Origin: Pecten maximus
Lineage: Eukaryota
Length of the DNA stretch: 64,000 nt
Reading direction: 5' to 3'
Assembly: GCF_902652985.1 (NCBI RefSeq)
Contig: NC_047018.1
Coordinates: 9,920,001-9,984,000 of the forward strand
This document shows, in pieces, positions 8,221-58,223 of this stretch. The first letter of the stretch is position 1, and each line of letters starts with the position of its first letter. The notes below the pieces were generated by a model. It ran no database searches. It was not told the DNA's origin and saw nothing but the letters and a program-made list of their open reading frames with translations. The position numbers and the translations under genes are program-made.

Positions 8221-9474
8221 GAAAATTTAGCAAAATATAACCACGAATTGTCAAGGTTCAGTATCTGATAATGGTGTCGATATGACGGTAAAACTCTTAC
8301 ACTTTCTTACAAACTAAAAATTACAAATGGAGTGAAAGTATCAAGTACACTTCAAATATAAGATGGTAACAGCAGTGCAGGTTGAGTTTTTCAAGGGTTG
8401 GGGATCCCCCTACCAGCGAGGTCCTCTCAACATGCACCACGTGCACAGAATCACAGAGAAAACAACATTGCGATGACTTCATTATAAAATTCATAATCAT
8501 TAGATGTTAAAAAATGTTGTGTACAGAATATATTTAAAATAGATGATTCCATTCATTGATCATAGTTAAAATTTTGACTCATCACAGAAAAAATTGAATC
8601 ATCATAGATATCTTGGTCGCAAAGTGCATCCATACGTGTTTGGAAATTTGTGCATGCACAGAACAACTTATTATTGCAAAATGTGTGATAAAAAAACAAA
8701 AACAACAACAACAACAACAAAAACAACAACAAAAAACACAAAAATGAACTTTACATGTAGAGAGTAATTTGTCGTATGTATAAAGTGTTTAACACTGTCT
8801 AGTCACGCTTTAGAGATGACTTTTGTGGACAGGAGTGCAAGACGAGAATAAATTGTTTTATAGTGATCAGATACTTAATTTTAAAATCGTATATTATTTT
8901 ATATATTATCATTTTGAGTTTTTAAAATAAAAACGTAGAATGTCTAGCTTTTAGTATAAACAGAGACATATATCACATATTTTCCGTACTATACTATCAG
9001 TATGATATTGTAATTTTTGTTTTTTTTGTAAAGGGTACGATTATTTTTCTAATTGACCGGTATTACTGCATAATTATATATGTACATGTTTCAACCCGAC
9101 TGTTTTGTATATTTTAATGGCACCACAGATATTAACTATGTGTATTTACCCTTGATAACACATTCCGCCTGGACAAGCACATGTCCACCTAGCCTATATC
9201 TATCTCCTTTTACGAATTCGTTATGTGATAACTTGCTCAATACTTGGCCTATTTATTCGCGTGAACACTCATTCGAAAGATCAAACTATAAAAACTACAA
9301 TCTTAAAAAAAACCTGTCCTTTGACATCATAACAGTGCGTGGTATATATATATATATAGATTGGGACTCCGTGTCCTTTTGGAAAACACGGTTGCGGACA
9401 CTTAATTTTTGTAATTGAGGGAAAGTGTTAGTTTCACCAGAGACCTATATAACTCTAATGTCTATTATACTTGA

Positions 9475-13325: not shown

Positions 13326-16300
13326 ATGGGAAAGATAAATCCTTCGAAAAGTTTTGGAAAGCAAAATATTGTCGATGTTTGGCAGCGGGCAACCAATAAA
13401 CATGACACGAAGTCATCAATAAACAAAAACACTGAAGAACGTTGGCAGTCTTCAACTAAACAGTTGATCAGTAAGTTCCATGCCAGCACCACATTCCATG
13501 GTATGCGGTTTGCATTCGGTGCTGATATCTCCATTAAACGAAGGTGAGTGTTGTTTTATTTTGTTTTCATCCATTAGTTATTCAATCATAGAAAAGTACG
13601 TAAAAATGGTTTCAATGGTGAATTGATATACTGTAAATCTTCAGTATCACTGGTAGGGTTTAACAATAGTTAAATAAATGTCATTACAGTAATTGGTTAG
13701 CACTGTAAATCTTCATTATCACTGGTAAGGTATAGATAATTAAATGTCGTTACAGTAATTGGTTAACACTGTAAATCTTCAATATCACTGGTAAGGTATA
13801 GATAATTAAATGTCGTTACAGTAATTGGTTAACACTGTAAATCTTCATTATCACTGGTAAGGTATAGATAATTAAATGTCGTTACAGTAATTGGTTAACA
13901 TTGTAAATCTTCATTATCACTGGTAAGGTATAGATAATTAAATGTCGTTACAGTAATTGGTTAACACTGTAAATCTTCGTTATCACTGGTAGGATATAAC
14001 AATAGATGGTTAACTGTCGTTACTGTAATTGGTTGCAACGCATATATAGAGCATCAGTGTAAGGTTAGGTGCTTATTGGTCAAAGTATCTTAGAGAAGAA
14101 ATCGCGGTGAAAAGGCATACAAAATTAATGTGAAACTGGTAATGTAATATTTTAACTTGCTTGATAATAAAATACTTACAAATTTCTAAATTTTTGACAA
14201 TCTTGACTCTTAAAAAAATACTTAATCTTATTTAACATCACCTGTGCGTATGGTTTTGTAAAGAATAAGTTCAAAGTAAATATGATGACAAAATCAAAGT
14301 ATAAAAGAAAAAAAATGGATGTGATATGTGTGCTATATAATTTAATTTTGTATTAAGACATTTTTTCAAGGTTGTGACGATGAAAACATTCAAAGACAAT
14401 CTTGCATATTAAGGAAGTATAAACAAGTTAGAATGCTTAATCGTAAAGTAAAAAAGCCCTTATCAACATTAACAGTAGACTAGACCCAGAAACTTCATTA
14501 TCAACATTAATCGCAGTTTCATAAACACCATTGTCAACATGAATCGTAGATTCATAAACACCCTTGTCACATTAATCGCAGATTCAGAAACCTCCTTATC
14601 AACATTAATCGTAGACCCAGAAACCCAATTATCAACATTTATCGTAGACTCAGAAACCTCCTAATCAACATTAATCGTAGACTCAGAAACCTTCATTATC
14701 AACATTAATCGTAGATTCAGAAACCTCCTTATCAACATTAATCGTAGATTCAGAAACTTCATTATCAACATTAATCGTAGACTAAGAAACCTCCTTATCA
14801 ACATTAATCGTAGATTCAGAAACCTCCTTATCAACATTAATCGTAGATTCAGAAACTTCATTATCAACATTAATCGTAGATTCAGAAACCTCCTTATCAA
14901 CATTAATCGTAGACTCAGAAACCTTCTTATCAACATTAATCGTAGATTCAGAAACCCCCTTATCAACATTAATCGTAGACTCAGAAACCTCCTTATCAAC
15001 ATTAATCGTAGATTCAGAAACCTCCTTATCAACATTAATCGTAGACTCAGAAACCTCCTTATCAATATTAATCGTAGATTCAGAAACCTCCTTATCAACA
15101 TTAATCGTAGACCCAGAAACCTCCTTATCAGCATTAATCGTAGATTCAGAAACCCCCTTATCAACATTAATCGTAGACCCAGAAACCTCCTTATCAGCAT
15201 TAATCGTAGATTCAGAAACCTCCTTATCAACATTAATCGTAGACTCAGAAACCTCCTTATCAATATTAATCGTAGACTCAGAAACCTCCTTATCAACATT
15301 AATCGTAGACCCAGAAACCTCCTTATCAGCATTAATCGTAGATTCAGAAACCTCCTTATCAACATTAATCGTAGACTCAGAAACCTCCTTATCAATATTA
15401 ATCGTAGACTCAGAAACCTCCTAATCAACATTAATCGTAGACTCAGAAACCCCCTTATCAACATTAATCGTAGACTCAGAAACCTCCTTATCAATATTAA
15501 TCGTAGACTCAGAAACCTCCTTATCAATATTAATCGTAGACTAAGAAACCTCCTTATCAATATTAATCGTAGACTCAGAAACCTCCTTATCAACATTAAT
15601 CGTAGACTCAGAAACCTCCTTATCAATATTAATCGTAGACTCAGAAACCTTCTTATCAGCATTAATCGTAGACTCAGAAACCTCCTTATCAATATTAATC
15701 GTAGATTCAGAAACCTCCTTATCAACATTAATCGTAGACTCAGAAACCTCCTAATCAACATTAATCGTAGACTCAGAAACCTCCTTATCAACATTAATCG
15801 TAGACTTAGAAACTTCATTATCAACATTAATCGTAGACTAAGAAACCTCCTTATCAACAGTAATCGTAGACTCAGAAACCTCCTTATCAACATTAATCGT
15901 AGACTCAGAAACACCCTTATCAACATTAATCGTAGACTCAGAAACCTCCTAATCAACATTAATCGTAGACTCAGAAACTTCATTATCAACATTAATCGTA
16001 GATTCAGAAACCTCCTTATCAACATTAATCGTAGACTCAGAAACCCTCTTATCAACATTAATCGTAGACTCAGAAACCTCCTTATCAACATTAATCGTAG
16101 ACTCAGAAACCTCCTTATCAACATTAATCGTAGACTAAGAAACCCTCTTATCAACATTAATCGTAGACTCAGAAACCTCCTTATCAACATTAATCGTAGA
16201 CTCAGAAACCTCCTTATCAACATCAATCGTAGACTCAGAAACCTCCTTATCAACATTAATCGTAGACTCAGAAACCTCCTTATCAACATTAATCGTAGAC

Positions 16301-19300
16301 TAAGAAACCTCCTTATCAATATTAATCGTAGACTCGGAAACCTCCTTATCAACATTAATCGTAGACTCGGAAACCTCCTAATCAACATTAATCGTAGACT
16401 CAGAAACCCTCTTATCAACATTAATCGTAGACTAAGAAACCTCCTTATCAATATTAATCGTAGACTCAGAAATCCCCTTATCAACATTAATCGTAGACTC
16501 AGAAACCTCCTTATCAACATTAATCGTAGACTAAGAAACCTCCTTATCAATATTAATCGTAGACTCAGAAATCCCCTTATCAACATTAATCGTAGACTCA
16601 GAAACCTCCTTATCAACATTAATCGTAGACTCAGAAACCCTCTTATCAACATTAATCGTAGACTCAGAAACCTCCTAATCAACATTAATCGTAGACTCAG
16701 AAACCCTCTTATCAACATTAATCGTAGACTCAGAAACCTCCTAATCAACATTAATCGTAGACTCAGAAACCCTCTTATCAACATTAATCGTAGACTCAGA
16801 AACCTCCTTATCAACATTAATCGTAGACTCAGAAACCTCCTAATCAACATTAATCGTAGACTCAGAAACCCCGTTATCAACATTAATCGTAGACTCAGAA
16901 ACCTCCTAATCAACATTAATCGTAGACTCAGAAACCTCCTTATCAACATTAATCGTAGACTCAGAAACCTCCTAATCAACATTAATCGTAGACTCAGAAA
17001 CCTCCTTATCAACATTAATCGTAGACTCAGAAACCCTCTTATCAACATTAATCGTAGACTCAGAAACCCCTAATCAACATTAATCGTAGACTCAGAAACC
17101 TCCTTATCAACATTAATCGTAGACTCAGAAACCCTCTTATCAACATTAATCGTAGACTCAGAAACCTCCTTATCAACATGAATCGTAGACTCAGAAACCC
17201 CTTATCAACATTAATTGTAGACTCAGAAACTTCATTATCAACATTAATCGTAGACTCAGAAACCTCCATATCAACATTAATCGTTGACTAACGTATTCTT
17301 CAACGTTTTAAGTGATTGAACTCAGTTTTGTGTCTCCTTACATTAAAAGTAATTATAAAGAGCGATTTTCCGGCAATGGTTAGACGTGCATGATGCAGAT
17401 ATATCCCTTTAAATGACGGAGAGGTAAAGGAAATGATCACAATAGTTGATATCGGACTAGTATATATCATCATGATGAATCCCCATACAATAGATTAAAG
17501 CTGATTATTTTTGTACGGACTGCAACTCATCTGAGCACCATACTGAACTATTTCCACGAATATCAATTTGAAATTCAATTACGTTGAAGGGAATAACTTT
17601 TAAACATCTGTCACCAGCAATTAAGTGATGTTTTGTTTCACAGGGGCTTGGCACGATTTTCCAAATGATAGTCCATATATATATGTATATAGTACATATA
17701 TATATTTAGACTATCATTTGGAAAATCGTGCCAAGCCCCTGTGTTTTGTTTCGTACATTTGCACCTTGATAAAACGGGCACGTACCTTAAAAGTAACAGA
17801 TCAGCCAAATTTCAACACGTCATCGTGAATCGGTCTCTAAATAGTTTTCGCCACATTTCAAAACAATAGTTTTATGCATTTAGGTTGATAAAGGTGTAGT
17901 TTTGTAGGTTCACCTGCTATTCAATATAACTCATTTGCTGATTTCTGTATTACGTTTCCATTAATAACATTTACAATATTTACAATATTAAGCGCTGGAA
18001 TAGTTATTTGTCATTTAGGGAAAAAAACTTTCTACAATATATTGCATGAATGTTTAACACAGCTAATTTTAAGATAAGGAATATTTTAAAACTAACGCAT
18101 GTCACGGGTATACATACTGTATTCACGCAGGTACATATCCTAATATTTCGGTGTTAGTTATAGTACTTAATGCTTATCATCTATTAAATCTCTATGCCGA
18201 CAGATCAGCATAACTGCTAAAGGCAGAAATATGATTATTTCATGTGGCGATATAGATCATCTATTAAATATTGGATTTCTATATCTAATGAATCCCCGTG
18301 AGACAACAATGATTGCATGGATGTAAACAGATTTAATGCGTTATTGAGAACTAACGAGTAACGATATTCCGTACTAAACCTTGACCTGAATTTCTTAATT
18401 ATACGAGGTGGATAGGCTGTAATGAACGGCTACAAATCCAAAGTACTATTGTTTATAACACAAGTTATGTTTCTGTAAGAGTTCACACACATCATTATCT
18501 TACTGAATTGTCTTCGAATTTCCTCGCTCCAACGTCTCTCGGGTCATTGTTGTTAATAACTGCTACATGTATTAAAAGAATGTCTTCCTTCATTATGCAA
18601 TCTTCTCTCCTTCCCCTTTGACCTCAATTGTCTTTCGTTGAAACGCCGTCCTGCCTCATGTAGTCTTACTTACTAAACAGTCCTCTTTTACGGTTTAGTT
18701 CAGTTTTGCCCTTATCCTAATCGTCGCCTTTCTTTACACTCTAGCCTTTCTTCTCGGCATTATTGTTGTTATCTCCTCCTAGCATCGTCATTCATGACAT
18801 GTTTTCTCTACCTCATACGCCATCCCTTTTCCTCCATTCGCATTCACTTTTCATTGATTTTTTGACATCATCGTCGTTGTTCATGGAACCGTATACCCTA
18901 AGAATAAGGCGGGACTGATACATAGTAAAACGTGGGAATTGTGTCTGTATAGACATACTTTAGCTTGATTCCAAACTTAACACCTGCGGGCATTACATAC
19001 TATTAGTTTGTGACTTACAGAGTGATATGGATTTCCCTGTGCGTTCTCAGCACGTGCCTTCTAGCCATAGATATTACAGAGAGGATACAGCATTACATAT
19101 CGTATCCGGTATCTGTGAACCTCCAGGTAAAATATACAGAAAACATGGAGTTTCCCGCCGTCACTATTTGCAACCAAAATAGTTTCAGGTAAGTTATTCA
19201 GCCTACAGTGTAGAAAGCAAACTTCTTACTATATTGGAAAATCTAGAAAGAAATAATAGTTCGAAAGCAATTTACAATAAATAAATACATTTTTTGGGTA

Positions 19301-22300
19301 TTTGTCATTTATGATACACAAACTTGCAAAATATGATGTCTGTTAAATATGAAACTATACTAAAAACCAGGACTCATGTTTACTACGATCCTATCTAAGT
19401 TAAATTATCTCGTGGTTGAAGGAGGACGCTGTCGTTGAAAAACGGACATTACGAGATATTGAAGGCGTTATATGAGAAGGAGGACTCGTCAAGGGGTAGG
19501 GATGTTTTACTGGAGAGGTCGATCAACGTTACAATGGAGACATTGTACACAAACAATTCTCACCGTGCAGAGGACCTCATTGTGACGTAAGAACGTCTCT
19601 ATTGACACTCGGAACAGTGATAATATCTAAAAACCTCACTATATGTTACATATTTGAAAGATAGCAGACATGTTTTGTACTGTAAAACTTATTAATAAAA
19701 CTTCCAATGATGTAAAGTTGATTTATAAGTCTAAATAGCAATACTACATAAGCTGTAGATCAAAGATGGTATTATTTTTATGTTTTATAGTTGCAAATGG
19801 AAAGGAGAAGCTTGTAACTGGTCTGACTTCAAACCTGTGTTGACCCAACATGGACAATGTTTCACTTTCCTTGGTAACACGACCACCGAGGACGGTCGTA
19901 TCGTCGACTCGCCAGGTAAGGTTCATATCCTAGGTAACCCGTCCACAGGACGGGACTGTCAGAACGTTGACTCTCCATGTAAGCCTCATATCCTCGGTAA
20001 CCCGTCCACTGGGCAGGAACTGTCAGAGCGTTGACTCGCCAGGTAAATATCGTATCCTGGGTTACATGTCCACTGAGTGGGAAATGTCAGAGCGTTGACG
20101 CGCCAGGTAAGTCTCATATCCTAGGTTACCCGTCCACTGCGTGGAAACTGTCAGAGCGTTGACTCGCAAGGTAAGTCTCATATCCTGGGTTACCCGTCCA
20201 CTGAGTGGGAACTGTCAGAGCGTTGACGCGCCAGGTAAGTCTCATATCCTAGGTTACCCGTCCACTGCGTGGAAACTGTCAGAGCGTTGACTCGCAAGGT
20301 AAGTCTCATATCCTGGGTTACCCGTCCACTGAGTGGGAACTGTCAGAGCGTTGACGCGCCATGTTTGTCTCATATCCCAGGTTACCCGACCTCAGGATGG
20401 GAGCTGTCAGAGCGTCGACTCGATAGATAAAGCTTATACTCTAAGCATTTGACATGAACGACCAAAGGTTCGACCAAAGGAAAATTTGGGTCTGTAAATT
20501 GATATTTTATGAATGCTTGATGAAACATGTTTCTTTCCAATTTTTCGAGGAGGTCACAATAAATTTAGAATCTAACAAATTAGATATTTGTTTCTGTATA
20601 ATAATGATAATAAGAATAATTTGTTTTTGATTGATTATTGTTACTTAGGATCAAATCTATCTATCTTAAATAGCGTTGTTAATCACAAAACATTGTGATT
20701 TTTCGTTGTTAAACATAGGAGTGGATAACGGTTTAGAACTGGTGTTGAATGTGGAAGACTATGACAGTATGGTGGGACCACACAGCAGCAGCGGGGTGAA
20801 GGTCGTCCTCCACCACGACACCGAAGTCCCCATGCCCGAATTCGGTAACGAGCTCCCCACGGGTCGACACGGCTTCATGGACGTTCAGGTCTCTAAGGTA
20901 TGGACGAGTTTAGCATTATATGTTACGCAATGTACATCATTCTTTGATAAAAACAACAACAATAATGGTGTAAGTTTTGTTCTTTTATTTAACAACTCTT
21001 TCGCTTCAATTCGTTAGTAATGTAGAACAAATGAATAACTAACAAACAAAATGAATAAATAAATACACGTAAAGCATAATTTGCTAATATACAAATATGG
21101 TTAGAATTCAAGGCTACATTGTGTGACAGTCCAGTTAGTTGAGATATGTTTGTCACAGACAATTGTTGTTATTACTTCTGTAGAATAGCTATGGCGTCCA
21201 AAATCCCGAAACTCAAAAACAGAAAATTGCTTAATGTAAACGTTTCATTCTTATAATACAGCAAAAAGAAAAAAGAAAAAGAAAACAAAATGCTTCTCTC
21301 GAACCATTTATAGAGTGCTTTGTTATAATAAGAGTGTCATTCGGTTAAGGCGCAGAACGTTCCTCCTCCCCACGGAAACTGTGTGGACCGTACTCTGATG
21401 TATATGGGAACTTACTCCTACACAGTTGGAGCCTGCCAAATGGAATGTGAGATGCAGTATGTGTCAGCTCTGTGTCATTGTCGACCGATACACATGCCTC
21501 GGGGAATGAGTAAGTGTGTTTCTATGAATAGAAAATATATATTATAATGTCGCTGAGATAAAAACTCAAAGAAGAAGATTTCATAAAAAAAAATGGGTAT
21601 TATGGAACCTTCAAGTAATCAGGAAGAGGCTGAAAGTACCACTTTTAATTTCCGAATGTTTGTATCGCATGCGTACCTGACTTTATTCCTTAAACGTTTC
21701 AGGTTCTCTCCCGTCTTGCAACGTTGTGCAATACAACAGATGTTTGGTGGAATCGAAAGGTATCAACATCTTTCTTTTCTTAATAGTTCGGCAAGCACTC
21801 TCATATCAAATTGTATCTTTTCTTAATAGTTCGGCAAGCATTCTCATATCAAATTGTATCATTTCTTAACAGTTCGGCAAGCATTCTCATATCAAATTGA
21901 ATCATTTATTTATAATTTGGCAAGCATTCTCATATCAAATTGTATCATTTCTTAACAGTTCGGCAAGCATTCTCATATCAAAATTTTTAAAAGGATATTA
22001 AAAGTATTGGATTTTTTACAGTGAAATACCGCCGACTCCATGACGATACGTGCAGCTGTCCCGTGCCATGTGCTCAGACCTGGTACCAACCTGATCTCTC
22101 CTATGGTGCACTATCTAGATTTTCTTCTAATAAAAGGAAAATTTTTCAAAATCTTAATCTCAGAAATCGATTGAGGCATTCACGTGAGATGGCTTTCCGA
22201 GAAGAAATGGACTTTTATAAATTAAATAAGCAACATTTGCATCTTGACAAAGTAAGTTTACCAAGCTTTTACCGTGTATTGAATAATCTGGAGACTGTCG

Positions 22301-25300
22301 ATTCGACACTTAATAGGTCTAGCAATATAATACGGCGTTTCAACTTCGACATTCAACGTACACGGAAGTACCTAGAAAAAGGCCACGAGGTGTACCATAG
22401 GTACCGAACATATTCATATTTACTTGACAAAACGCGTTTGGGTATTGACTTCTTGGAACTAACGTCTTACCTTGATAGTCAGGTTCGCTTTATGGAATCA
22501 ACCGACAGGCCTGACAAATGGAAAGCATATTATGACATGATGCTATCTAAAGCTAAATCTAGCCGACAAGCTATAAAAACAGTGTTGAAGGAGGAGGATT
22601 TCTTACCCTGGCTCTCGCAGCAGTATCCAAACATTTGGTTTAATGAAAATGACTTACAAACGGACTCTACATCACATGTGTTTACTGTCGACGCCGATCT
22701 GCAATGGATGACAATCCATAAAACTATGGTTAACAGCAGGGATACAATCAATCGTTACATTGAATTGGCCAAGTCTTACATGGAAGGTGGAAACAGTAAT
22801 TTGAGGCAACTGCAGAAACTTAACTCAACTTCAGTTAGGTTGGCAAACGACTTTCAGCAACAACGGGAAAGCATGGACATGTTTTATAAAGAAAAAGTTG
22901 TCAGCAACCTAAACCATCTCAGTCACGTGTTGAACCTACGATCAGAACCGATGACTTCCGTGATATCTACATTCGATAAAAAATGCACCACAATGTACAT
23001 CACTAAGGGTATACGAAAGGCCAGCATGTATCTCAATATGACTGTTGATTATCTTTCACAATATTTTAAGAGAAGACGAATACTCCAGACGATTGCTATA
23101 CATTTTGACTCGAATGAAATGAAATATTTCATGGAAGAGGTGAGAACATATGCGTCGGGAACATTTCATAACAAGGAATTCAGTATGGAGTCAGTGGATT
23201 GTCTGGAAATGCTGCTGGATGAGTATTATGCCATGCTGACGGTATACGTATTAATCAAACCAGCTTTCACGGAATTTAAATATCAGTTCGATTATAAACA
23301 TTTCAGTAATATCATGCCATCACTACGTGAAATAAAGAACTTTAACTTCGAAAAAGTTGAGCTCCTGGAGGTGGTATTGGTGTTGGACGAGGTCAGGATG
23401 ATCACGGGCGAGTTTAAACAATCTCTCCTCATGAATCAACAATTTTACAGGTAAACCATGAAACACATCGTCTACTGAAAGAAAATAATTATCTACTAAT
23501 CAATATATCATACCAAACCCTGACGGTAAATACAGCAAATTAATATAGCATACCAAACCCTATCGGTAAATACAGCGAATCAATTTAGCATACTGAACCC
23601 TTAACGATTTATTGATTTATTTATTTTAAAAAATCATTGTAAAAAGTCAGTAGCATACTTCAGAAACTTATATTGTATTCAGTTTTTAAAAGGTATAATG
23701 TTAATATTTTTCGGAACTAAACTGAGAATTAGGTAGATGCGATGATAATTTATACATTTTTTTTTAGTTAAGGAAGGAAAAGGAAAACAAATGGCATTAA
23801 CTAATTAAACTGTACTGTTTTATTACCTAGAGATAACTTCCTTCACCTGAATGTCTTGTTCCATGAACTGAGATACGATCAGCTCACCCAACAAATCGAC
23901 TACACGATTTTCGCTCTCATGGGTATGTACAATATATATTGGTAAGATGCACTGACAAGAAATCCATGCGTTTGTGTATATGGCCTTGTACCATGGTTGC
24001 GGTTATTTTTCTTTGAAGATGACTGTTGCATAAAGTCGATAGTCTGAGAATGGGCGGAGCTTAGGAATACAATAACTACCCTAATACATTGTTTGGGGTG
24101 GAGCCTAGGTGTGCAGTAACTTCCTAGTTATTTTTCACTGTTAGACCGAGATAATGTTCGTGTATCAATTTACAGTCATTTCCAGAGAAAAATAGCTACA
24201 GCACTGTTCACTACAAAACAACATCAGTTCTGTGGTTCTTAACACCTTCTTTACGTCAAAATCATTATAAAAAAAACGATTCAAGGTTATTTTGTCCATG
24301 AATACTATTATGAAAGACTATCTGATGTCTTCTTCAAACATTTTATATCTGCTTGAATTAGAATGTCACTAGTTCCCGACATTGTAAGGTATTACGATAA
24401 CAGGAAACGCGTAATAAACACTATTTGTGAGTTATTTGCGGATTCCATTGTACGTATTTCTACATTCGTCGCAGGTATTTCCGAACGCAATATGAATATG
24501 CTCTGTTAGACATATGAAAACAACAAAAAAAGACATCCTTAACTCGATGTGACCAACGAAAGTGTGCCTAAACTGTCAAAAATCGAACTTGTGTGCTTCT
24601 TACACTATTATCCACAAATGATTTACAAAATATAGTGTTGATATTGTGTTTCCTGTCATCTGTACACCTTAAAAATGTAAGATAGGAGATATATTAATTG
24701 ATTATGTACCAAATTCGAGCGCGATACCAGTTTTGACGGTCAAAATACGATCTCGTATGATGGGTATTTTGGACGATAAAAACGGTAAATTTGCTGTCAA
24801 ACCAAGTGTGTATTATGAAGCATTGCATGTCTGTTGGAATCCGTATAGAACATCACGTGGTCGTCTCCACACACGAGTTCTAGGAATTGGTATTAAATCG
24901 AGTTTCATCTGATTAGACGACTTGACCCAAATGTTTGTTGTAAGAATAGTACTGATCGCGCTAATACTTGATGTTTTAATAAGGCGGCGTAAACACTGTT
25001 AAATCATGATTACCATTTAGTGTAGTAAAACTTTATCATAAAGCTGCTCTATAACTTATCAATAGATTCCACGTGAACTGTATTCGTACGCGTGAGAAAT
25101 GACTTCTTATAACTACGGAATGGAAATCAATCCCTAAACAGTAGTTGGAACACCATGTTTGGTGGAACCATATTTTGATGGAGTGTTCCTATCATCAATA
25201 TTTGCGATTACGAAAAAATATCTCTCCGATGGTCAAAAAGCGACGTCCGTCTATCGTACATTACAATAGAACTGAACCTAATCAGGCCACATCACATAAT

Positions 25301-25731
25301 GATAGTCGCTCAACAATTAAAAACTGTTATTATTTTGTAAGTGAATTCAGAATTCTAAATAATTTAAAAAGTAATAAATGAAAAATCATAAAGACTGTAT
25401 TCATGACAGACACTTCTATGTATTTCTAATTGAGAAAACTGATCTCTCGCAAAAATAACACTACCTTTGTTATAACCTATTTTCTGGTGGGTTTTTTTCC
25501 TCAGGCGATATAGGTGGAGCAATGGGTCTGTGCATCGGAGCCAGTGCGCTAAGCGTTTTCGAGATCATTGACTTCGTCACCGTGTTGATGGGGTTTCTCA
25601 TGGTTAAAAAGACACTTCCATCCAAACCACGGTCCAAAATCATCCACGTCGAACCTAAGGATGAGTCCAAAGGGAAAACGACACCTCTACCATCTGTTAA
25701 CACCAAACAAAATCAGACCCTTGACAACTAA
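13326..25731 (+). CDS. DEG/ENaC (ASIC-like, amiloride-sensitive) cation channel subunit with a very large knuckle insertion, 10 coding exons, 939 aa
   Basis: Exons 13326-13543, 19021-19188, 19422-19586, 19791-19915, 20719-20897, 21350-21509, 21703-21759, 22022-23450, 23831-23922 and 25505-25731 are GT-AG and phase-consistent (2820 nt). The exon 3 and exon 6 acceptors could shift by 1-2 codons. Motifs: STTFHG (HG), TM1, FPAVTICNQN, C.W....C...DF....T.HG.CFTF, G..NGLEL.LNVE, GVKVVLH, a 10-Cys thumb ending CSCPVPC, NFLHLNVLFHEL, and TM2 GDIGGAMGLCIGAS with the GAS filter. Confidence 0.92.
13625..14035. repeat. Minisatellite, 66-bp unit, about 6 copies (channel intron 1)
   Basis: cactgtaaatcttcattatcactggtaaggtatagataattaaatgtcgttacagtaattggttaa recurs at 13701, 13767 and onward. 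Confidence 0.92.
14455..17290. repeat. Minisatellite, 33-bp unit (ttatcaacattaatcgtagactcagaaacctcc), about 85 copies (channel intron 1)
   Basis: Highly homogeneous tandem array; it produces the spurious 795-aa (MLIRRFLSLRL)n ORF. Confidence 0.97.
17640..17742. mobile_element. 103-bp hairpin MITE with 34-bp perfect TIRs and a 10-bp target-site duplication
   Basis: acaggggcttggcacgattttccaaatgatagtc pairs with gactatcatttggaaaatcgtgccaagcccctgt. The element is flanked by gttttgtttc at 17630-17639 and 17743-17752. Confidence 0.8.
19868..20430. repeat. Minisatellite of about 63-64 bp, about 9 copies, spanning the exon 4/intron 4 boundary of the channel gene
   Basis: Unit tcctaggttacccgtccactg..gggaactgtcagagcgttgactcgccagGTAAGtctcata. 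The first copy is the 3' end of exon 4 plus its donor site. Confidence 0.88.
21770..21982. repeat. Minisatellite, about 43-44 bp, about 5 copies (channel intron 7)
   Basis: tttcttaa(t/c)agttcggcaagcattctcatatcaaattgtatc is repeated. Confidence 0.85.
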
Positions 25732-26002: not shown

Positions 26003-27590
26003 CATACCTTGTGTGACCTCTTGACCTACCACACTTACTTTAATATACAATACATTCCATACCTTGTGTGACCTCTTGACCTACTTCACGTACTTTATAG
26101 TACAATACATTCCATACCTTGTGTGACCTCTTGACCTACTTCACGTACTTTATAGTACAATACATTCCATACCTTGTGTGACCTCTTGACCTGCTACACG
26201 TACTTTATAGTTCAATACATTTAATACCTTGTGTGACCTCTTGACCTGCTACACGTACTTTATAGTTCAATACATTCCATACCTTGTTTGACCTTTTGAC
26301 TTACCTCATCTACTTTATAGTACAATATAGTCCATACCTTGTGTGACCTCTTCACCTACCATACACGTACTTTATAGTTAGTTATATTCCATATCTTGTG
26401 TGACCTCTTGGCCATCTACACGTACTTTATAGTACAATACATTCCATACATTGTGTGACCTCTTGACCTAGCATAATTACTTTATTATACAATACATTCC
26501 ATACCTTGTGTGACCTCCTGACCTACTATACACGTTCTTTATAGTACAAAACATTCCATACCTTGTGTGACCTCTTGACCCACTTCACGTACTTTATAGT
26601 ACAATACATTCCATACCTTGTGTGACCTCTTGACCCACTATACACGTACTTTATAGTACAATAAATTCCATATCTTGTGTGACCTCTTGACCTTCTACAC
26701 GTACTTTATAGTACAATACATTCCATACCTTGTGTGACCTCTTGACCCACTATACACGTACTTTATAGTGCAATATATTCCATACCTTGTGTGACCTCTT
26801 GAACTACTATACACGTACTTTATAGTACAACACATTCCATACCTTGTGTGACCTCTTGACCCACTTCACGTACTTTATAGTACAATATATTCCATACCTT
26901 GTGTGACCTTTTGACCCACTTTACGTACTTTAAGGTACAAAACATTCCATATCTTGTGTGACCTCTTGACCTACTTCACTTACTTTATAGTACAATATAT
27001 TCCATATCTTGTTTGACCTCTTGATCTACTATACACGTACGTTATAGTACAATACATTCCATACCTTGTGTGACCTCTTGACCCACTTCACGTCCTTTAT
27101 AGTACAACACATTCCATATCTTGCGTGACCTCTTGACCCAGTTCACGTACTTTATAGTACAATACATTCCATACCTTGTGTGACTTCTTCACCCAGTTCA
27201 TGTACTTTATAGTACCATACATTCCATACCTTGTGTGACATATTGACCTACTATACACGTACTTTATAGTACAATAAATTCCATATCTTGTGTGACCTCT
27301 TGACCTACTACAGTACTTTATAGTACAATACATTCCATACCTTGTGTGACCTATTGACCTACTATACACGTACTTTATAGTACAATAAATTCCATATCTT
27401 GTGTGACCTCTTGACCTACTACAGTACTTTATAGTACAATACATTCCATATCTTGTGTGACCTTTTGACCTACTTCACGTACTTTATAGTACAATACATT
27501 CCATATCTTGTGTGACCTTTTGACCTACTTCACGTACTTTATAGTACAATACATTCCATATCTTGTGTGACCTCTTGACCTACTTCACAG
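26003..27590. repeat. Minisatellite, 55-57 bp unit (ccataccttgtgtgacctcttgacctacttcacgtactttatagtacaatacatt), about 28 copies
   Basis: The tandem array begins just after the AATAAA at 25992, downstream of the channel stop codon. Confidence 0.95.
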
Positions 27591-27767
27591 CCTAGTACAT
27601 TCAAAAATTTCAAATATATTTGGTTTTTCTATCAATAAATTTTGATTGCATTGTCTGGTGACATGTCGAGCTAATTTGCATTATCAACCAATGGACAGGT
27701 CAGAGACGAGAACTGAATATAGCAAGGAGTACTGTGGTTTGTACATATCAAACAATGTTATGTGTGA

Positions 27768-28295
27768 AATGTATTGTTATGTATGTGTAGTAGTGTTACG
27801 TGCGTTGTTTTGTATGTGTAGTAGTGTTAAATGTGTTGTTTTGTATGTGTATTAGTGTTAAGTGTATTGTTTTGTATGTGTAGTAGTGTTAAGTGTATTG
27901 TTTTGTATGTGTATTAGTGTTAAGGGTATTGTTTTGTATGTGTAGTAGTGTTAAGTGTATTGTTATGTATGTGTAGTAGTGTTAAGTGTATTGTTATGTA
28001 TGTGTAGTAGTGTTAAGTGTATTGTTTTGTATGTGTACGTACGTGTTCACGTGTCTTGTTATGTCTTGTCGTCGTGTTCCGTGTCTTGTTTTGTCTGTGT
28101 CGTCGTGTTCCGTGTTTGTTCTGTCTGTGTCGTCGTGTTCCGTGTGGTTGTTTGTATGTGTAGTAGTGTTAAGTGCGTTGTTTTGTATGTGTAGTAGTGT
28201 TAAGTGTATTGTTTTGTATGTGTAGTAGTGTTAAGTGTATTGTTTTGTATGTGTAGTAGTGTTAAGTGTATTGTTTTGTATGTGTAGTAGTGTTA
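27768..28295. repeat. Minisatellite, 31-bp unit (taagtgtattgttttgtatgtgtagtagtgt)
   Basis: Period 31; it contains an internal block at 28037-28146 where A is replaced by C. Confidence 0.92.
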
Positions 28296-28439
28296 ATATT
28301 GTTTGTCAGTTCAGGACAACGCATCGACCAGTGCAGAAGGATTTTGCTTTGTGTGTTACATGTATCAAATTTGATGATTAAATGGCATCACTGGCACAGA
28401 GGCCGATGCGTTGTGAACAGCCTTTAGGTGTTTTAGAAT

Positions 28440-32134: not shown

Positions 32135-33565
32135 ATGGGAACGAGCGAAGTCGTAAAGATGAGAAAACTAAAACTCCATTTTTCGACTGTTATTTTACTT
32201 CTGCGAGATCCAAAAATTTGTCTTCTATTGTTTCTTATAGGAGCAGGAATTGTGTTACATTTGCGTACACGACACGAAAGCGTCAGAATAGATGAACGTG
32301 CTGCCAACTTTCGACAACGTCTCCTGCATCAAGACTTAAGCGATGAAAGAGAAAATGATAGAGGATACATGGAAACAGAAAATCAGGGAATTAAGGAGGA
32401 GAAAAGGGAAAAATCATTGTTACAGAGTCAGCGACAGGAATATGCTCGAGCTGCTAGTAACCTAAAGCTTATACCGGACTTACACCACCAACATCGGGTG
32501 AACATTGACCAGCACAGGGATCAAGAGAAGACACCAAGTGAAACACTTTCAAAGTTTTCTCCTAAACTGTATCCACTTGATTTCAATTTAACCAGAATTC
32601 TGCACCAGTACAAAAGGAAAGAAAATGCTGATTTACAACCAATCAATGTGTTAAATTATCGCTATTTAATCAATCCAGGTCACACCTGTAGTGGGTCAGA
32701 TCTCATACGGGTTTTATTCATTGTTAAAAGCTCCCCACACCATTTTTCACAACGAGAAATCATTCGCGATACTTGGGCTGACAGAAAACGGTTCCCGTGG
32801 GCTCGGACAATCTTTTCCTTTGGAATACCAAACAAAAACAACGTGACGTTAGCAGATCTACACGAGGAATCCGTTAGACACCAAGACATTTTCCTTGTTA
32901 GTTACCTGGATAGCTATTTAAACCTAACCTTGAAGACAATGAGTGGGTTGAAGTGGGCGGTAAGCAACTGTCACCGTGCTATGCATGTCGTTTCTGTAGA
33001 CGATGATGTATACGTCGCACCCGATTTATTACTCAGCTTTCTGGACAATCTTCCTCGGTGGAAAGCAGAAACATTATTCTCTGGCCATCGTCTTACAGGC
33101 ACGAAACCAATACGGGTCTCTTCATCCAAATGGTACACACCAAAGACTGAGTACCCTTTCAAAAATTACCCGCCTTATATTTTCGGAGGATTTGTTATTA
33201 TGTCTATGTCAACAGTGAGGAACTTCACGATAGCAGCTATGTATACCAAACTATTTAAATTTGAGGATGTGTATTTAGGAATTCTAGCGTCCAAACTTGG
33301 AATAAAGATCCGAGATAATATATTCGTTAACTCAGGACGGGCATTCACCGTATCATCCGCATTCAAAACCACAATTGCTTCTCATTATTACGGTAATCCA
33401 AAAGATTTAAGAAAAGCGTGGGACTGCCATTTGAGTATCCTAGACCAGCACGAAGATAAGGCAGTGTTTTGTGACTATATAGGCAAGCGACTAAAGCAGC
33501 TGAAATCTGAAATAAATAGTATAGCCGACTGGATGGAATTCGTACAGAAAAGGTCAAGCACTTGA
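32135..33565 (+). CDS. GT31 beta-1,3-glycosyltransferase, brainiac-like, copy 1 (type II Golgi protein, intronless CDS, 476 aa)
   Basis: N-terminal TM and stem, then LFIVKS.P.H...R..IR.TW, DI....Y.DSY.NLTLKT, VSVDDDVYV (DxD), KWY....EYP...YPPY, FEDVYLGI and IASH.YGNP..L..AW. The true start may be the second Met at 32159. Confidence 0.93.
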   Translation: MGTSEVVKMRKLKLHFSTVILLLRDPKICLLLFLIGAGIVLHLRTRHESVRIDERAANFRQRLLHQDLSDERENDRGYMETENQGIKEEKREKSLLQSQRQEYARAASNLKLIPDLHHQHRVNIDQHRDQEKTPSETLSKFSPKLYPLDFNLTRILHQYKRKENADLQPINVLNYRYLINPGHTCSGSDLIRVLFIVKSSPHHFSQREIIRDTWADRKRFPWARTIFSFGIPNKNNVTLADLHEESVRHQDIFLVSYLDSYLNLTLKTMSGLKWAVSNCHRAMHVVSVDDDVYVAPDLLLSFLDNLPRWKAETLFSGHRLTGTKPIRVSSSKWYTPKTEYPFKNYPPYIFGGFVIMSMSTVRNFTIAAMYTKLFKFEDVYLGILASKLGIKIRDNIFVNSGRAFTVSSAFKTTIASHYYGNPKDLRKAWDCHLSILDQHEDKAVFCDYIGKRLKQLKSEINSIADWMEFVQKRSST

Positions 33566-37788: not shown

Positions 37789-39159
37789 ATGCGAAGGCCG
37801 AAAATAACAGTTGCAAGGTTCCTTTGGCAGTATGTCTTTAAATTCCGTTTCCTATTTCCTGTGGTAGGGATTTTTATCTTGTATTCCTTATACAATGGTG
37901 AAACAAACAACAAGAGAATCCTACATGTGGAGAAGCGTCCCGTACAACAGTATGGCATTACAGAAGAAACACGATATCGCTTTGAAATGGAACAAGAAGA
38001 TAGTGTTTTTTCCGAGGAAAAGGATGGTCCAAAGCAACATGCTAACCGGAAGGAGTCTGGAAACATTTCTCAAAGGGAATTGAAACTGATAGCCGATGTG
38101 AAAAAATTCGCTGCACTGGAAAACAGTGTAGATGTACAAGTTGAAAAGGGGACGTTTTCGCCTAATACATATCCATGTAGTGTGAATCTATCTAGGATTT
38201 TACGTCAATATGACACAGAAGGTTTTGCGGAAGAGCAGCCAATTAACAACATCAATTATAGCTACACTGTCAATCCCTACAACACGTGTAAAGTATCTGA
38301 TAACATAAAGGTTCTCTTTATAGTGAAAAGTCGACCAGACCATACGCTACCTCGAACAGTCATTCGGGAGACTTGGGCTAACACTAAAAGATTTCCATCA
38401 ATTCGTGTCATTTTCTCTTTCGGGATGCCAAAATACTCCTCACGACTGCAAGCCTTACTGGGCGAATCGTCTACACACGGCGATATTCTCATCGTTAAAG
38501 ATTACATAGATGACTATTACAACCTAACCCAGAAGACCATTGGTGGTTTTAAGTGGGCGGTAACACACTGCAAACATGCGGCATATGTAGTGTCTGTCGA
38601 CGACGACGTGTACGTCGCACCTGATTTGCTCCTCAGAATTCTGGACAGACCCCATATTCGGAAAGTAGAGAGACTTTTCTCAGGCCATTTGATGATCGAT
38701 ACAAAACCAATCAGGAATCCTAAAGATAAATGGCTCGTTTCTATGTCCGAATACCCTTTTACGAACTATCCTAACTACATTTTCGGAGGATTTGTTATAA
38801 TGTCTATGTCAACAGTGAGGGACTTCACAATAGCAGCTATGTATACCAAACTATTTAAATTTGAGGATGTGTATTTGGGAATATTAGCTGCTAAAATCGG
38901 AATAGAGGCGACTAATAATGGGTATGTTAATTCTAAGAAAACATTCACTGTTTCAGAGTCATTTAAAACACTCATCGCCTCCCATTTTTATGACAATCCA
39001 AAAGATTTACAAAGAGCATGGGATTGTCATTTAAGTATACTTGACCAAAATAATGACAAATCTATTTTTTGTGACTATATAGGTAAGCGTCTTCAAAAAC
39101 TTAAATCTGAAATAGACAGTATTATAAGCTGGATGGAGATCGTAAAATTCAACTCTTAA
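37789..39159 (+). CDS. GT31 beta-1,3-glycosyltransferase, brainiac-like, copy 2 (456 aa)
   Basis: Same motif set as copy 1 (LFIVKS, YNLT.KT, VSVDDDVYV, FEDVYLGI, IASH); intact ORF with an N-terminal TM. Confidence 0.93.
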   Translation: MRRPKITVARFLWQYVFKFRFLFPVVGIFILYSLYNGETNNKRILHVEKRPVQQYGITEETRYRFEMEQEDSVFSEEKDGPKQHANRKESGNISQRELKLIADVKKFAALENSVDVQVEKGTFSPNTYPCSVNLSRILRQYDTEGFAEEQPINNINYSYTVNPYNTCKVSDNIKVLFIVKSRPDHTLPRTVIRETWANTKRFPSIRVIFSFGMPKYSSRLQALLGESSTHGDILIVKDYIDDYYNLTQKTIGGFKWAVTHCKHAAYVVSVDDDVYVAPDLLLRILDRPHIRKVERLFSGHLMIDTKPIRNPKDKWLVSMSEYPFTNYPNYIFGGFVIMSMSTVRDFTIAAMYTKLFKFEDVYLGILAAKIGIEATNNGYVNSKKTFTVSESFKTLIASHFYDNPKDLQRAWDCHLSILDQNNDKSIFCDYIGKRLQKLKSEIDSIISWMEIVKFNS

Positions 39160-41558: not shown

Positions 41559-43053
41559 ATGCGAAGACGTAGACATAATTTCAGACCAGTTATGTTGGTC
41601 TGGAAACATCCTGGGAAAATATGTTCAGTGTTAATACTGGCTGTAGTGTTTGTAGTGATTTACCTTTCTACCAGAGACATTGACACGATCGACAATACTG
41701 CCAGCATCAATTTTCAGAGGAGGTTCATAAAACTATTTGATGCAGATCAACGAACAAACAATATCAATAGTATAAAACGAACCAGACCAACACGCCTTCC
41801 CATAGAGAAACCTGGCCACAACGGAGGCAAACGAGTAAAGCAAGAAATACAACATCACGATCAAGCTATATAACCAGGTGGGAGACACATACAGTCAGCA
41901 AGATCGTGATTCAAACCGGCAAAGAGGTCAACATAAAGATAGTGTTCAACAGAATCAACATCAAGAAGTTCAACGTAAAAATATAACCACACAGGATCAC
42001 GTCGACCAGGATCACAGCGGCCTAGACGACGATCCAAAGAAAGGGGTCATTTTTACACCTAAAAGGTATCCAATGCCTGTGAATATGACCGATATCTTAA
42101 GACAATATCATATGAAAGGCTCTGCTGATGAACAGCCAACAAATTCGTTTGATTATCGCTATATTATCAGCCCTGATCAAACGTGTAACCAACCGGATGC
42201 TGCAAGAGTGTTGTTTATAGTAAAGAGTAGCCCTGAACACCATTTACGACGAGTGACTATCCGTGAAACTTGGGGAAACAGTAAACGATTTCCGTCGATA
42301 AGAACCATTTTTTTGTTTGGGATTCCAAAAAATGGTAAATTGTTACTAAATCTACAGGACGAGTCAGTGACATATAACGATATAGTTCTTGTGGATTATA
42401 CTGACAGTTATTATAACCTTACCCTAAAAACCATTACTGGATTGAAATGGGCGGTTACCCATTGTGCGCGTGCAAAATACGTAATATCCATTGACGATGA
42501 TGTGTACGTCGCCCCTGACTTGCTACTTAGGTTTCTTGACAGGCCTAATATAAAGAAAGAAGAAACTGTTTTCTCCGGCCATCTCTTGGTCAACACGGAG
42601 CCCATTCGGGACGTGCATTCAAAATGGCAAGTGCTAAAATCTGAATACCCTTTTAAGAACTATCCTAATTATATTTTCGGAGGATTCGTCATCATGTCGA
42701 TGTCAACAGCGAGGGACTTCACAATAGCAGCGATGTATACCAAATTGTTTAAATTTGAAGATGTGTATTTAGGAATTCTAGCTGCTAAAATCGGAATAGA
42801 GGCGACTAATAATGGGTATGTTAATTCTTGGAAAACGGTCACTGTTTCAGAGTCATTTAAAACACTCATCGCCTCCCATTATTACACTGACCCAAAAGAT
42901 TTACAAAGAGCATGGGATTGTCATTTAAGTATACTAGACCAGGACGATGAAAAGGCTATTTTCTGTGATTATATCGGTGATCGTCTACGTAAGATACAAT
43001 CGGAAATAAACAGTGTCATTGGATGGATGGCAGCCGTTAAAAGTTGGACATGA
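41559..43053 (+). pseudogene. GT31 brainiac-like copy 3, frameshifted in the stem (recent null allele, assembly error or micro-intron)
   Basis: The TM-containing ORF 41559-41873 and the catalytic ORF 41878-43053 are in different frames. The catalytic domain is fully intact. Confidence 0.75.
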
Positions 43054-48801: not shown

Positions 48802-50397
48802 ATGCCGCGACCAACACACAGAAGCTTGACGATAATCTGGCGACATTCTTTGAGAATATGTTCATTGTCTTTACTGACATTTGTAGTTACCATGCTCTAC
48901 CTACATAACCGGGACGTCGACCACATCCACACAACATCTCGCATATCTAATGTCAATGACCGTCCTTTATACGACTGGCAAAGTGAGAGGAGTAATTCAT
49001 CGTCCAAGAACAACTTTCCTGTAGAGGAGGAATACGAGAATCAGAAAAATCGCATCGCTCAACGTCAAAATGAAAATACAGAGGAACATGGAGATGGTTT
49101 AAAATCAAGGGGTCGTGTCGATACAGTTCACGCAATTCGAAATCAATTAGTTGAACATAAAGATATAGCGCAGCAGGGTAACGACATTGATCGTCAAATG
49201 GTCCAGCACAAAGATTTAACTCAGGAGATCAGCAACAGTGATCGTCAAATTGTTGAGCACAAAGATATAGCTGGACAAATTAGCGACATTGATCGTCAAA
49301 TGGATCAACGTGAGGATATTATTAAACAGAATCGTGATGCTGTTCAAATCAGACATTTAAATGAAGTGAAAATGATTGAAAAAACATTTACACCTCATGA
49401 ATATCCATTTAACGTGAACTTGTCTGACATATTACGTCAGTATGATACAAGAGGCTACGCTGCCGAGAAACCAATAAATGTATTTGATCACCGCTACATC
49501 ATCCATCCCGACCAAACATGCATTGGAAGCGATACTATAAAAGTCTTGTTTATTGTGAAAAGCAGTCCCGACCATAACGTGAAAAGGGCAATCATTCGCG
49601 AGACGTGGGCAGACAGGAAACGATTTCCGTGGCTAAGGACTGTCTTCTCCTTTGGAATACCAAAAAATGGCAAGTCATTGTTAGATCTGCAAGAGGAATC
49701 TACAAAATTCAACGACATTCTTCTCGTGAACTACTCAGATGACTATTATAACCTAACATTGAAGACTATGAGCGGATTACGGTGGGCGGCAACCAATTGT
49801 GCTCATGCTTCGTATGTTGTATCTATAGATGACGACATTTACGTAGCACCCGATTTCCTGCTTAGTTTTCTCGACAAACTTCCGGTTCGGACAGCTGAGA
49901 ACCTTTATCACGGCCATTTGATTCATGAAACAGCTCCAGTGAGAGACAGAAATGGTCCTTTTCGTAAATGGTACGTTTCAATAAATGAGTATCCTTTCCA
50001 AACATATCCCAACTATATATTCGGAGGATTTGTCATCATGTCGATGTCGACAGTGAAAACATTTACAATAGCTGCCATGTATACCAAGCTGTTGAAATTT
50101 GAGGATGTTTATTTGGGGATTTTAGCAGCCAGGGTTGGAATAGACGCTACAGATAGCGGACATGTTAATGCTAAGAAAACACTAACTGTTTCCGAATCGT
50201 TTAAAACAGCCATTGCCTCTCATTTCTACCAGGATCCATACGATCTTAAAAGAGCTTGGGAATGCCATTTAAGTTTAATAAGTCATAATACTCCCAAGAG
50301 CATACTCTGTGACAATATAGGCACACGTTTGCACCATCTGAAGTCTGAAATTGACAGTATCGTGAACTGGATGGAATCTGCTAAGAAATCAATATGA
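48802..50397 (+). CDS. GT31 beta-1,3-glycosyltransferase, brainiac-like, copy 4 (531 aa, repeat-extended stem)
   Basis: TM, a long stem with 17-aa repeats, then LFIVKSSPDH...R..IRETW, YYNLTLKT, VSIDDDIYV, FEDVYLGI and IASH. Confidence 0.93.
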   Translation: MPRPTHRSLTIIWRHSLRICSLSLLTFVVTMLYLHNRDVDHIHTTSRISNVNDRPLYDWQSERSNSSSKNNFPVEEEYENQKNRIAQRQNENTEEHGDGLKSRGRVDTVHAIRNQLVEHKDIAQQGNDIDRQMVQHKDLTQEISNSDRQIVEHKDIAGQISDIDRQMDQREDIIKQNRDAVQIRHLNEVKMIEKTFTPHEYPFNVNLSDILRQYDTRGYAAEKPINVFDHRYIIHPDQTCIGSDTIKVLFIVKSSPDHNVKRAIIRETWADRKRFPWLRTVFSFGIPKNGKSLLDLQEESTKFNDILLVNYSDDYYNLTLKTMSGLRWAATNCAHASYVVSIDDDIYVAPDFLLSFLDKLPVRTAENLYHGHLIHETAPVRDRNGPFRKWYVSINEYPFQTYPNYIFGGFVIMSMSTVKTFTIAAMYTKLLKFEDVYLGILAARVGIDATDSGHVNAKKTLTVSESFKTAIASHFYQDPYDLKRAWECHLSLISHNTPKSILCDNIGTRLHHLKSEIDSIVNWMESAKKSI

Positions 50398-57710: not shown

Positions 57711-57712
57711 AC

Positions 57713-58223
57713 GAGTTTATGAGAATCTTTTTTGAGGGTGCAGATAGCATTTATCAGTCTGCGAAGGAAAACTCTCCCGCCATACACTACTGATGATGCC
57801 CAGTTTAATTTGCCTACTAAAGATTGCAGTTGCTTTTTGGTTGCACGACGACGAGAACTGAAAATGTCCAGATCTGACTTAAGTGCTTGAAGCTTCTCAT
57901 TAGGAAGCCTTAGATGCATTTCATGGGAATCTATCTCAATACCCAGAAAAGTTAAAGTGCGGGATGGATCGACAACTTTGTTCCAGCTAATCATGAATCC
58001 CAACCTTCGTAAGAGGTATAATAAGGTATTCAAGGTATACATGCATTGTTCCTTAGATAATTCACAGATAAAGAAGTCGTCCAAGTATGCTACTATGTTA
58101 CGAAAACCCTTACGGTTCATGATACGAATCACAGCCTGGGAAAGTCTATGAAAGATACTAGGTGCTAAACGAGAGCCAAATGGTAATTTTGTATCTATAA
58201 AGTAACGAGTACTATCTTTAAAT
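57713..58223 (-). repeat. 511-bp exact duplication of the RT core (56793-57303) joined to the truncated 5' end of pol
   Basis: The sequence appears identical at offset 920, from gagtttatgagaatc to actatctttaaat. Confidence 0.93.

Follow-up and report, generated by a model that had tools for sequence, protein, structure and literature searches.

The window analysed here, 64,000 nucleotides of the king scallop Pecten maximus (RefSeq assembly GCF_902652985.1, contig NC_047018.1, positions 9,920,001 to 9,984,000), carries on its plus strand a DEG/ENaC channel gene, together with four galactosyltransferase-like genes and a retroelement remnant. The channel gene has ten exons (13326 to 25731 of the window), with AG/GT dinucleotides at all borders. 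Nine of these exons are 57 to 224 bp long; exon 8 measures 1429 bp, and most of it encodes a domain of about 440 amino acids that, in our alignments, stands where vertebrate ASICs have a few residues of the knuckle. We find that this insert is transcribed and kept by selection, within a DEG/ENaC gene that is complete in its other parts.

The exon blocks were found by comparing every open segment of the plus strand with the syntenic locus of the bay scallop Argopecten irradians (L005) and then reading the exon borders. All ten blocks are kept in the same order in the two species. Their lengths in Pecten total 2775 nt, or 925 codons; an initial annotation of this stretch, made from the sequence alone, had given a model of 939 amino acids. 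Note that statements about the whole protein rest on searches with single exons or on natural database proteins. Membership in the DEG/ENaC family is given by colinear, exon-by-exon matches to Pfam ASC (PF00858) from the first transmembrane segment (TM1) to the second (TM2); exons 1 and 3 gave no match when searched singly against Pfam. The same family is matched by the Argopecten orthologue (P0008) and by a RefSeq Pecten fragment (P0007). The family hallmarks named in the initial annotation were all recovered in the exon translations: the HG motif in exon 1, ten thumb cysteines across exons 6 to 8, and GDIGG and the GAS filter (GDIGGAMGLCIGAS) in exon 10. By its sequence, the locus is an intact ten-exon DEG/ENaC (ASIC-like) channel gene.

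Exon 8 is contained in a single open reading frame (ORF) of 477 codons without a stop (22021 to 23454, plus strand). Its acceptor is a polypyrimidine tract with AG at 22020-21, and its donor GT at 23451-52 has the consensus CAG/GTAAAC. The translation starts (V)KYRRLHDDTCSCPVPCAQTWYQPDLSYGALS and its last residues are QQFYR, whereupon exon 9 starts (R)DNFLHLNVLFHEL; frame and splice borders confirm the earlier description of a stop-free 1429-bp exon joined to exon 9 at this point. Within exon 8, only residues 6 to 48 match Pfam ASC (profile positions 355 to 391), and exon 9 picks up the profile at 403. A transcript that skipped exon 8 would be frameshifted, given the phases of the neighbouring borders (1 at the end of exon 7, 2 at the start of exon 9).

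The closest solved structures are ASIC1, ASIC2 and ASIC5 (for example, 2QTS, 6L6P and 9MKZ), which rank ahead of FaNaC and ENaC. The partial Argopecten orthologue matched solved ASICs at E values of 7e-25 to 7e-23, and a protein of the annelid Dimorphilus gyrociliatus did so at 9e-45. When the Argopecten protein is aligned to human ASIC2, its residues 8 to 145 correspond to ASIC2 244 to 379 and its residues 583 to 650 to ASIC2 393 to 460, leaving 437 residues in the place of 13; the insert of about 440 residues that had been proposed at the knuckle site stands. On the N-terminal side, the insert is anchored by the first 32 residues of exon 8, which form the last part of the thumb and palm strand beta10. 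On the C-terminal side, the anchor MNQQFYRDNF is aligned to KSEQYIGENI of ASIC, which we take, from the chicken ASIC1 structure, to be the last knuckle helix (alpha7) leading into beta11. The final ~10 residues of the insert (MNQQFYR) correspond to that helix. Because the ASIC2 and ASIC5 alignments and the colinear Pfam ASC matches flank it, we place the insert at the knuckle, which it replaces and extends between beta10 and the last knuckle helix/beta11.

Transcription was read from runs recorded merely as "RNA?". These do contain spliced molecules, as runs X3 and X4 both show exon 9 joined to exon 10 across GT..AG borders (23921/2 to 25504/5). Runs X1, X3 and X4 have contigs that tile exon 8 without a joint inside it, and the internal splicing that would have undone the initial annotation was not seen in any contig. 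One X4 contig runs from 23003 to 23450 and continues with 12 letters identical to 23831 to 23842, the start of exon 9. In X3, coverage of the introns that flank exon 8 is far below that of the exon itself. Upstream, contigs of three runs start 50 to 70 nt 5' of the exon 8 acceptor. They break at ~21950-21970 because a 43-bp tandem repeat ends there, and de Bruijn contigs break at repeats; this minisatellite lies just upstream of exon 8. A separate observation concerns a 160-nt contig of run X7, which joins 21494-21521 to 22020-22151, with only 28 letters on its shorter side. The ends of the skipped segment read CT..AC on the plus strand (GT..AG if read from the minus strand) and do not fit the plus-strand gene model. 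This joint could be antisense spliced RNA or an assembly chimera.

Exon 8 also shows constraint. Pecten and Argopecten align by blastn from 22013 to 23455 at 69.5% identity, ending within nine bases of both splice sites, and DNA alignment between the two loci is otherwise restricted to exons, with the exception of one minisatellite in intron 4. By the Nei-Gojobori method, the proportion of nonsynonymous differences (pN) in exon 8 is 0.218 and that of synonymous differences (pS) 0.696, with a pN/pS of 0.31, and pN is lower than pS in all six windows of 80 codons. The corrected rates are dN 0.26 and dS ~2 (saturated), with a dN/dS of ~0.13, far from the value near 1 that would have spoken against a functional insert. 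A six-frame search of the whole 918-Mb genome found exon 8 as a single copy, the sole other match being a 35-residue thumb stretch in a paralogue. With no second genome copy in this search, no mobile-element domain in Pfam and a syntenic position, we find no sign of the transposon or repeat-derived ORF that the initial annotation had allowed for.

Six proteins were recovered when 1.84 billion representatives were searched exhaustively with phmmer; all of them come from the gene context seen here, and none points to a family in which the insert stands alone. Matches in word-indexed searches were restricted to pectinid and Dimorphilus proteins. Two of the relatives, P0003 and P0004, align across the entire insert at 21 to 26% identity. 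These and P0002 are ORFs on genomic contigs, and all three end in FYR followed by GT; the end of the exon is thus conserved. On the contig with P0002, exon 9 follows 380 bp further downstream, and a relative of P0003 sits downstream of an ASC-matching ORF. Five aligned sequences share 29 invariant columns, including two cysteines. Among annotated proteins, the Argopecten orthologue (703 amino acids, 62% identity over exon 8) comes from a model that joins exons 5 to 10 and starts inside exon 5. The Ylistrum balloti orthologue (411 amino acids) and the RefSeq Pecten model, "uncharacterized protein LOC117325184" (425 amino acids), start at the same internal Met, residue 157 of exon 8 (window position 22492). 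All three public models are partial relative to the ~925 residues of the gene, and all are labelled "uncharacterized". Because public annotations of these genes are partial, the architecture is not visible in current protein sets. The initial annotation had guessed that similar uncharacterised predictions might exist elsewhere, and they do, in Argopecten, Ylistrum and Dimorphilus. On the contig of ENA ERZ26168041 that carries the relative P0010, a second long ORF (442 amino acids, no Pfam match) lies 1.4 kb upstream of the 491-amino-acid giant-exon ORF on the same strand, with an ASC-matching ORF further upstream of both. The two long ORFs may represent genes in tandem or giant exons that are used alternatively.

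The Dimorphilus counterparts are two full-length, uncharacterised DEG/ENaC proteins, DgyrCDS14629 (P0006, 922 amino acids) and DgyrCDS14464 (P0009, 905 amino acids). Like the scallop channel, they have an ASIC-like core with an insert of ~490 residues at the same site: P0006 has 487 residues where ASIC5 has ~6, and the P0009 insert is 32% identical to that of P0006. They also share with the scallop an intron at the end of the insert, in the same place or within one codon. They differ in that one very large exon holds the insert and most of the channel core, whereas the scallop exon adds just the end of the thumb and beta10. In BLASTP, scallop and Dimorphilus sequences align ~65 residues into the insert from the N-terminal side and ~20 from the C-terminal side; the interiors showed no profile-profile similarity in hhalign (probability 0.2). 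The AlphaFold2 model of the Dimorphilus insert is all-helical, at a predicted local distance difference test score (pLDDT) of 44 that is too poor for comparison, and the ESM Atlas returned only generic helical neighbours for it, at query template modelling (TM) scores of at most 0.34. As judged from these alignments, the architecture is common to a mollusc lineage and an annelid, and a common origin of the whole insert is unproven, because the interiors lack detectable similarity.

The scallop insert is poor in proline and glycine (1.6% each) and has three N-glycosylation sequons, NRS (residue 97 in exon 8 numbering), NST (267) and NMT (338), as well as two cysteines; the initial annotation had likewise listed these three sequons, two cysteines and a low content of proline and glycine. 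A sequon at or beside the NMT site is kept in most bivalve-type relatives, and the NST site is also kept in the closer ones. The cysteines, at residues 321 and 393, each stand at the start of a predicted helix and are the pair invariant among the five aligned sequences, which fits an extracellular disulfide. A conserved furin-type site was considered and rejected: KRRR in Pecten is NQER in Argopecten, and it is not conserved in P0002 either.

AlphaFold2 predicts an entirely alpha-helical insert, in keeping with the helical character first suggested for it. The model has 14 helices, with a mean pLDDT of 70.8 that rises to ~90 at residues 120-200 and 230-300. Helices 62-120 and 260-320 each extend over ~60 residues, and those at the two termini span residues 44-60 and 444-474. 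In VIA-align, residues 116-300 correspond to one four-helix bundle and residues 57-120 with 300-470 to a second. The domain is therefore predicted to be a two-tier rod, in which stacked bundles are joined by the two ~60-residue helices and both chain ends lie at the base by the palm. Conservation is even along the length of the insert, and hhalign comparison of five segments with each other detected no internal duplication.

No known domain accounts for this rod. Pfam found in exon 8 the ASC edge alone, plus an insignificant match to DUF4494 (E 0.037). Foldseek of the insert model against the PDB gave nothing at E <=0.001; the best match was the McpZ ligand-sensing domain, with an E value of 0.02 and a TM score of 0.17. 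A wide VIA-align search returned generic helical bundles only (Z <=12.4, where the noise level that the tool states for helical bundles is ~13), and in it de novo designed bundles rank level with sensor domains. The ESM Atlas gave no usable match for the scallop insert. Thus, within the searches made, no solved structure or Pfam family covers the insert, and the already characterised domain that the initial annotation had reckoned with was not found by Pfam, exhaustive phmmer, Foldseek or VIA-align. Full-text literature searches likewise found no description of a large DEG/ENaC knuckle insert, although the search engine was unable to match the term DEG/ENaC. Note that the family itself is well known and that DEG/ENaC loops carry large additional domains at other sites.

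Intron 1 of the channel gene contains a 33-bp minisatellite that reads as a 795-amino-acid ORF on the minus strand, an artefact. The 64-bp repeat of intron 4 starts just after exon 4, and a related repeat in Argopecten intron 4 (L005 ~8870-9066) is the sole intronic DNA that aligns between both species. Two further minisatellites lie downstream of the gene. The four single-exon beta-1,3-galactosyltransferase-like genes that come next stand in tandem, and their proteins have conserved C-terminal halves and variable N-terminal stalks. Two of the four were scanned, and both match Pfam Galactosyl_T (E 3e-44 and 2e-41); a Galactosyl_T gene likewise follows the channel gene in Argopecten. In the retroelement remnant on the minus strand, ORFs encode reverse transcriptase and RNase H, and a phage-integrase SAM-like domain is present in one protein. 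The remnant includes a duplicated reverse transcriptase fragment and looks DIRS-like from these domains.

Table 1. Coordinates of the features of the 64,000-nucleotide window of Pecten maximus, with the evidence for each
Feature	Position	Strand	Evidence
Exon 1, start codon and cytoplasmic N-terminus with HG motif TTFHGMRF	13326-13543	+	61% amino acid identity to Argopecten L005 974-1219; ATG and GT donor read
Minisatellite, 33 bp, 85 copies, intron 1	14481-17289		
Exon 2, TM1 and post-TM1 strand (ERIQHYISYPV...FPAVTICNQNSFR)	19021-19188	+	Pfam ASC 24-78, E 1.8e-13; 82% amino acid identity to Argopecten
Exon 3, finger region	19422-19586	+	70% amino acid identity to Argopecten L005 8271-8438; AG/GT borders
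Exon 4, CKWKGEACNWSDFKPVLTQHGQCFTFLG	19791-19873	+	Pfam ASC 156-182; kept in Argopecten
Tandem repeat, 64 bp, 8 copies, intron 4	19902-20422		
Exon 5, beta-ball and palm (VDNGLELVLNVEDYD...)	20719-20897	+	Pfam ASC 202-261; 91-93% amino acid identity to Argopecten
Exon 6, first half of Cys-rich thumb	21350-21509	+	Pfam ASC 274-322; donor GA/GTAAGT
Exon 7, 57 bp, SLPSCNVVQYNRCLVESK, middle of thumb	21703-21759	+	Matches residues 97-115 of Argopecten P0008; AG/GT borders
Minisatellite, 43 bp, 4.8 copies	21776-21982		
Exon 8, giant exon, 1429 bp	22022-23450	+	Open frame; RNA tiling; blastn to Argopecten
Exon 8 start, thumb end (CSCPVPC) and palm strand beta10 (WYQPDLSYGALS)	22022-22119	+	Pfam ASC 355-391; P0008 counterpart aligns up to ASIC2 379
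Exon 8 rest, inserted domain predicted to be all-helical, ~440 amino acids	22120-23450	+	AlphaFold2 model; constraint against Argopecten
Exon 9, palm strands beta11-beta12 (DNFLHLNVLFHELRYDQLTQQIDYTIFALM)	23831-23922	+	Pfam ASC 403-430; RNA joints
Exon 10, GDIGG, TM2 with GAS filter, C-terminal tail, stop	25505-25731 (coding to 25728)	+	Pfam ASC 433-455; GT..AG joint from exon 9
Minisatellite, 55 bp, 29 copies	26003-27588		
Minisatellite, 31 bp, 17 copies	27762-28296		
Beta-1,3-galactosyltransferase-like gene	32135-33565	+	
Beta-1,3-galactosyltransferase-like gene	37789-39159	+	
Beta-1,3-galactosyltransferase-like gene	41878-43053	+	
Beta-1,3-galactosyltransferase-like gene	48802-50397	+	
Retroelement remnant, looks DIRS-like	55238-58309	-	ORFs with reverse transcriptase, RNase H; phage-integrase SAM-like domain
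Duplicated reverse transcriptase fragment in the remnant	57701-58309		

We favour the reading that the insert is a built-in tether or gating arm of the channel, with a probability of about 0.4. Each subunit would carry a glycosylated mast that projects well above the channel and engages something extracellular, for instance the matrix, mucus, cilia or a partner protein. Since the insert connects directly to beta10 at one end and to beta11 at the other, the palm strands that control gating would then receive any movement or occupancy of the mast. The palm strands of ASICs move during gating. We prefer a tether because the predicted shape is an extended glycosylated rod and not a compact pocket domain, and because the alpha-ENaC knuckle is already implicated as a site of matrix tethering (PMC6955349).

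Several points weigh against this reading. The AlphaFold2 model was built on an alignment of eight rows and covers a single exon; how the rod is oriented on the channel, and the trimer itself, lie outside it. The RefSeq models begin inside the giant exon. In the Pecten reads, the junction of exons 7 and 8 was not found, and it is supported by the Argopecten annotation and by the logic of frame and splice sites; the link between exons 8 and 9 is the 12-letter overhang of one contig. Many contigs extend into introns, which means that unspliced RNA or DNA accounts for some of the coverage. Moreover, the four-helix-bundle matches would suit a ligand sensor equally well.

In such a sensor, the distal four-helix bundle would bind a small molecule, ion or peptide, and the long helices would relay this to the palm strands, gating or modulating the channel. 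DEG/ENaC channels are often ligand gated, by protons (ASIC) or peptides (FaNaC), and sensor domains are among the best VIA-align neighbours of residues 116-300 (Adeh_2942, Z 11.8; PcaY_PP, 10.9; an MCP ligand-binding domain, 10.2; Tar/Tsr, 9.4-9.9), just as the top Foldseek match is to the McpZ sensing domain. However, all of these Z values fall below the noise level of the tool, designed bundles score equally, and neither Pfam nor phmmer detected sequence similarity to any sensor family. We regard a sensing module as possible though rather unlikely. A purely structural or organisational domain, acting in assembly, clustering, trafficking or spacing with no part in gating, would agree with the even conservation along the insert, as in a scaffold, with the common use of long helical bundles for oligomerisation, and with the lack of any catalytic or binding motif in Pfam. 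Direct wiring into beta10 and beta11 makes neutrality towards gating less probable, and we consider this role distinctly unlikely.

Two other explanations would deny the domain a place in a full-length channel, or any function at all. The main product might be truncated, from transcripts that start in or just upstream of exon 8 and encode the C-terminal part of the insert with TM2, or the gene might be a barely expressed relic. The internal start Met shared by the Pecten and Ylistrum models points this way, as do the contigs of three runs that begin shortly before the acceptor and the lack of any recovered read spanning exons 7 and 8. Yet RNA coverage upstream of the internal Met is at similar depth, and the contig starts coincide with the end of the 43-bp repeat. 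Furthermore, Argopecten keeps the order, splice sites and reading frames of all ten exons, 1 to 7 included, its public model joins exons 5 to 10, and in Dimorphilus the complete architecture is encoded by a gene with hardly any introns. Without TM1, a product would presumably have no route to the membrane. Truncation or decay thus appears quite improbable. That the insert is functionless, exonised neutral or mobile-element sequence would explain why it matches no known family or fold, but this origin is effectively refuted and hardly credible: the exon is single copy and syntenic with pN far below pS, relatives at 21 to 26% identity can still be aligned with 29 invariant columns, and the exon aligns between two scallops while its introns do not.

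If the tether reading is carried to its full extent, these genes would define a class of ASIC-like channels in some spiralian animals, in which the long-sought extracellular gating tether for DEG/ENaC mechanotransduction lies inside the channel polypeptide. This would be a helical mast with glycans, with a probable length above 10 nm, rooted in the knuckle and wired into the palm strands at both ends. Such a class would include scallops, other species and possibly annelids, should the Dimorphilus insert be homologous; as a whole, we hold this wider proposal to be unlikely. In the DEG/ENaC family, protons, peptides, shear and touch are sensed by one conserved extracellular scaffold. How force is carried to the gate is a matter of debate, and the tethers put forward for it are glycans or separate molecules. 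With a large, conserved rod between two palm strands relevant to gating, a channel of this kind would be a natural experiment on whether external signals can reach the pore through the knuckle and palm.

Among known systems, the bacterial sensor domains of Tar, Tsr, PcaY and McpZ resemble the insert model in having an up-down four-helix bundle and long continuous helices that lead to a membrane-proximal part. They have no sequence relationship to the insert and belong to dimeric bacterial receptors, in contrast to an insertion in a trimeric animal channel; nor does the insert group with 4HB_MCP-type sensors, as it has no Pfam match and its structural scores lie within the noise for helical bundles. 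Nematode MEC-4 and MEC-10 are DEG/ENaC channels with extra extracellular modules, for which an extracellular tether in touch has been proposed. Their additions are Cys-rich and occupy other loop positions, and their proposed tethers are separate matrix proteins, unlike the scallop insert, which is part of the channel chain. The GRIP insertion of ENaC is in the finger, is beta-rich and is controlled by proteolysis, whereas the scallop insert has no conserved furin-type site. In alpha-ENaC, N-glycans on palm and knuckle reportedly tether the channel to the matrix for the sensing of shear (PMC6955349). There an extracellular elaboration of a DEG/ENaC subunit regulates gating, as proposed for the scallop insert; the knuckle of ENaC is short. 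Vertebrate ASICs share with the scallop channel the domain order, the Cys-rich thumb, GDIGG and the GAS filter, and differ from it in the gap between beta10 and alpha7/beta11, which is 13 residues in ASIC2 and ~6 in ASIC5, compared with ~440 in the scallop channel.

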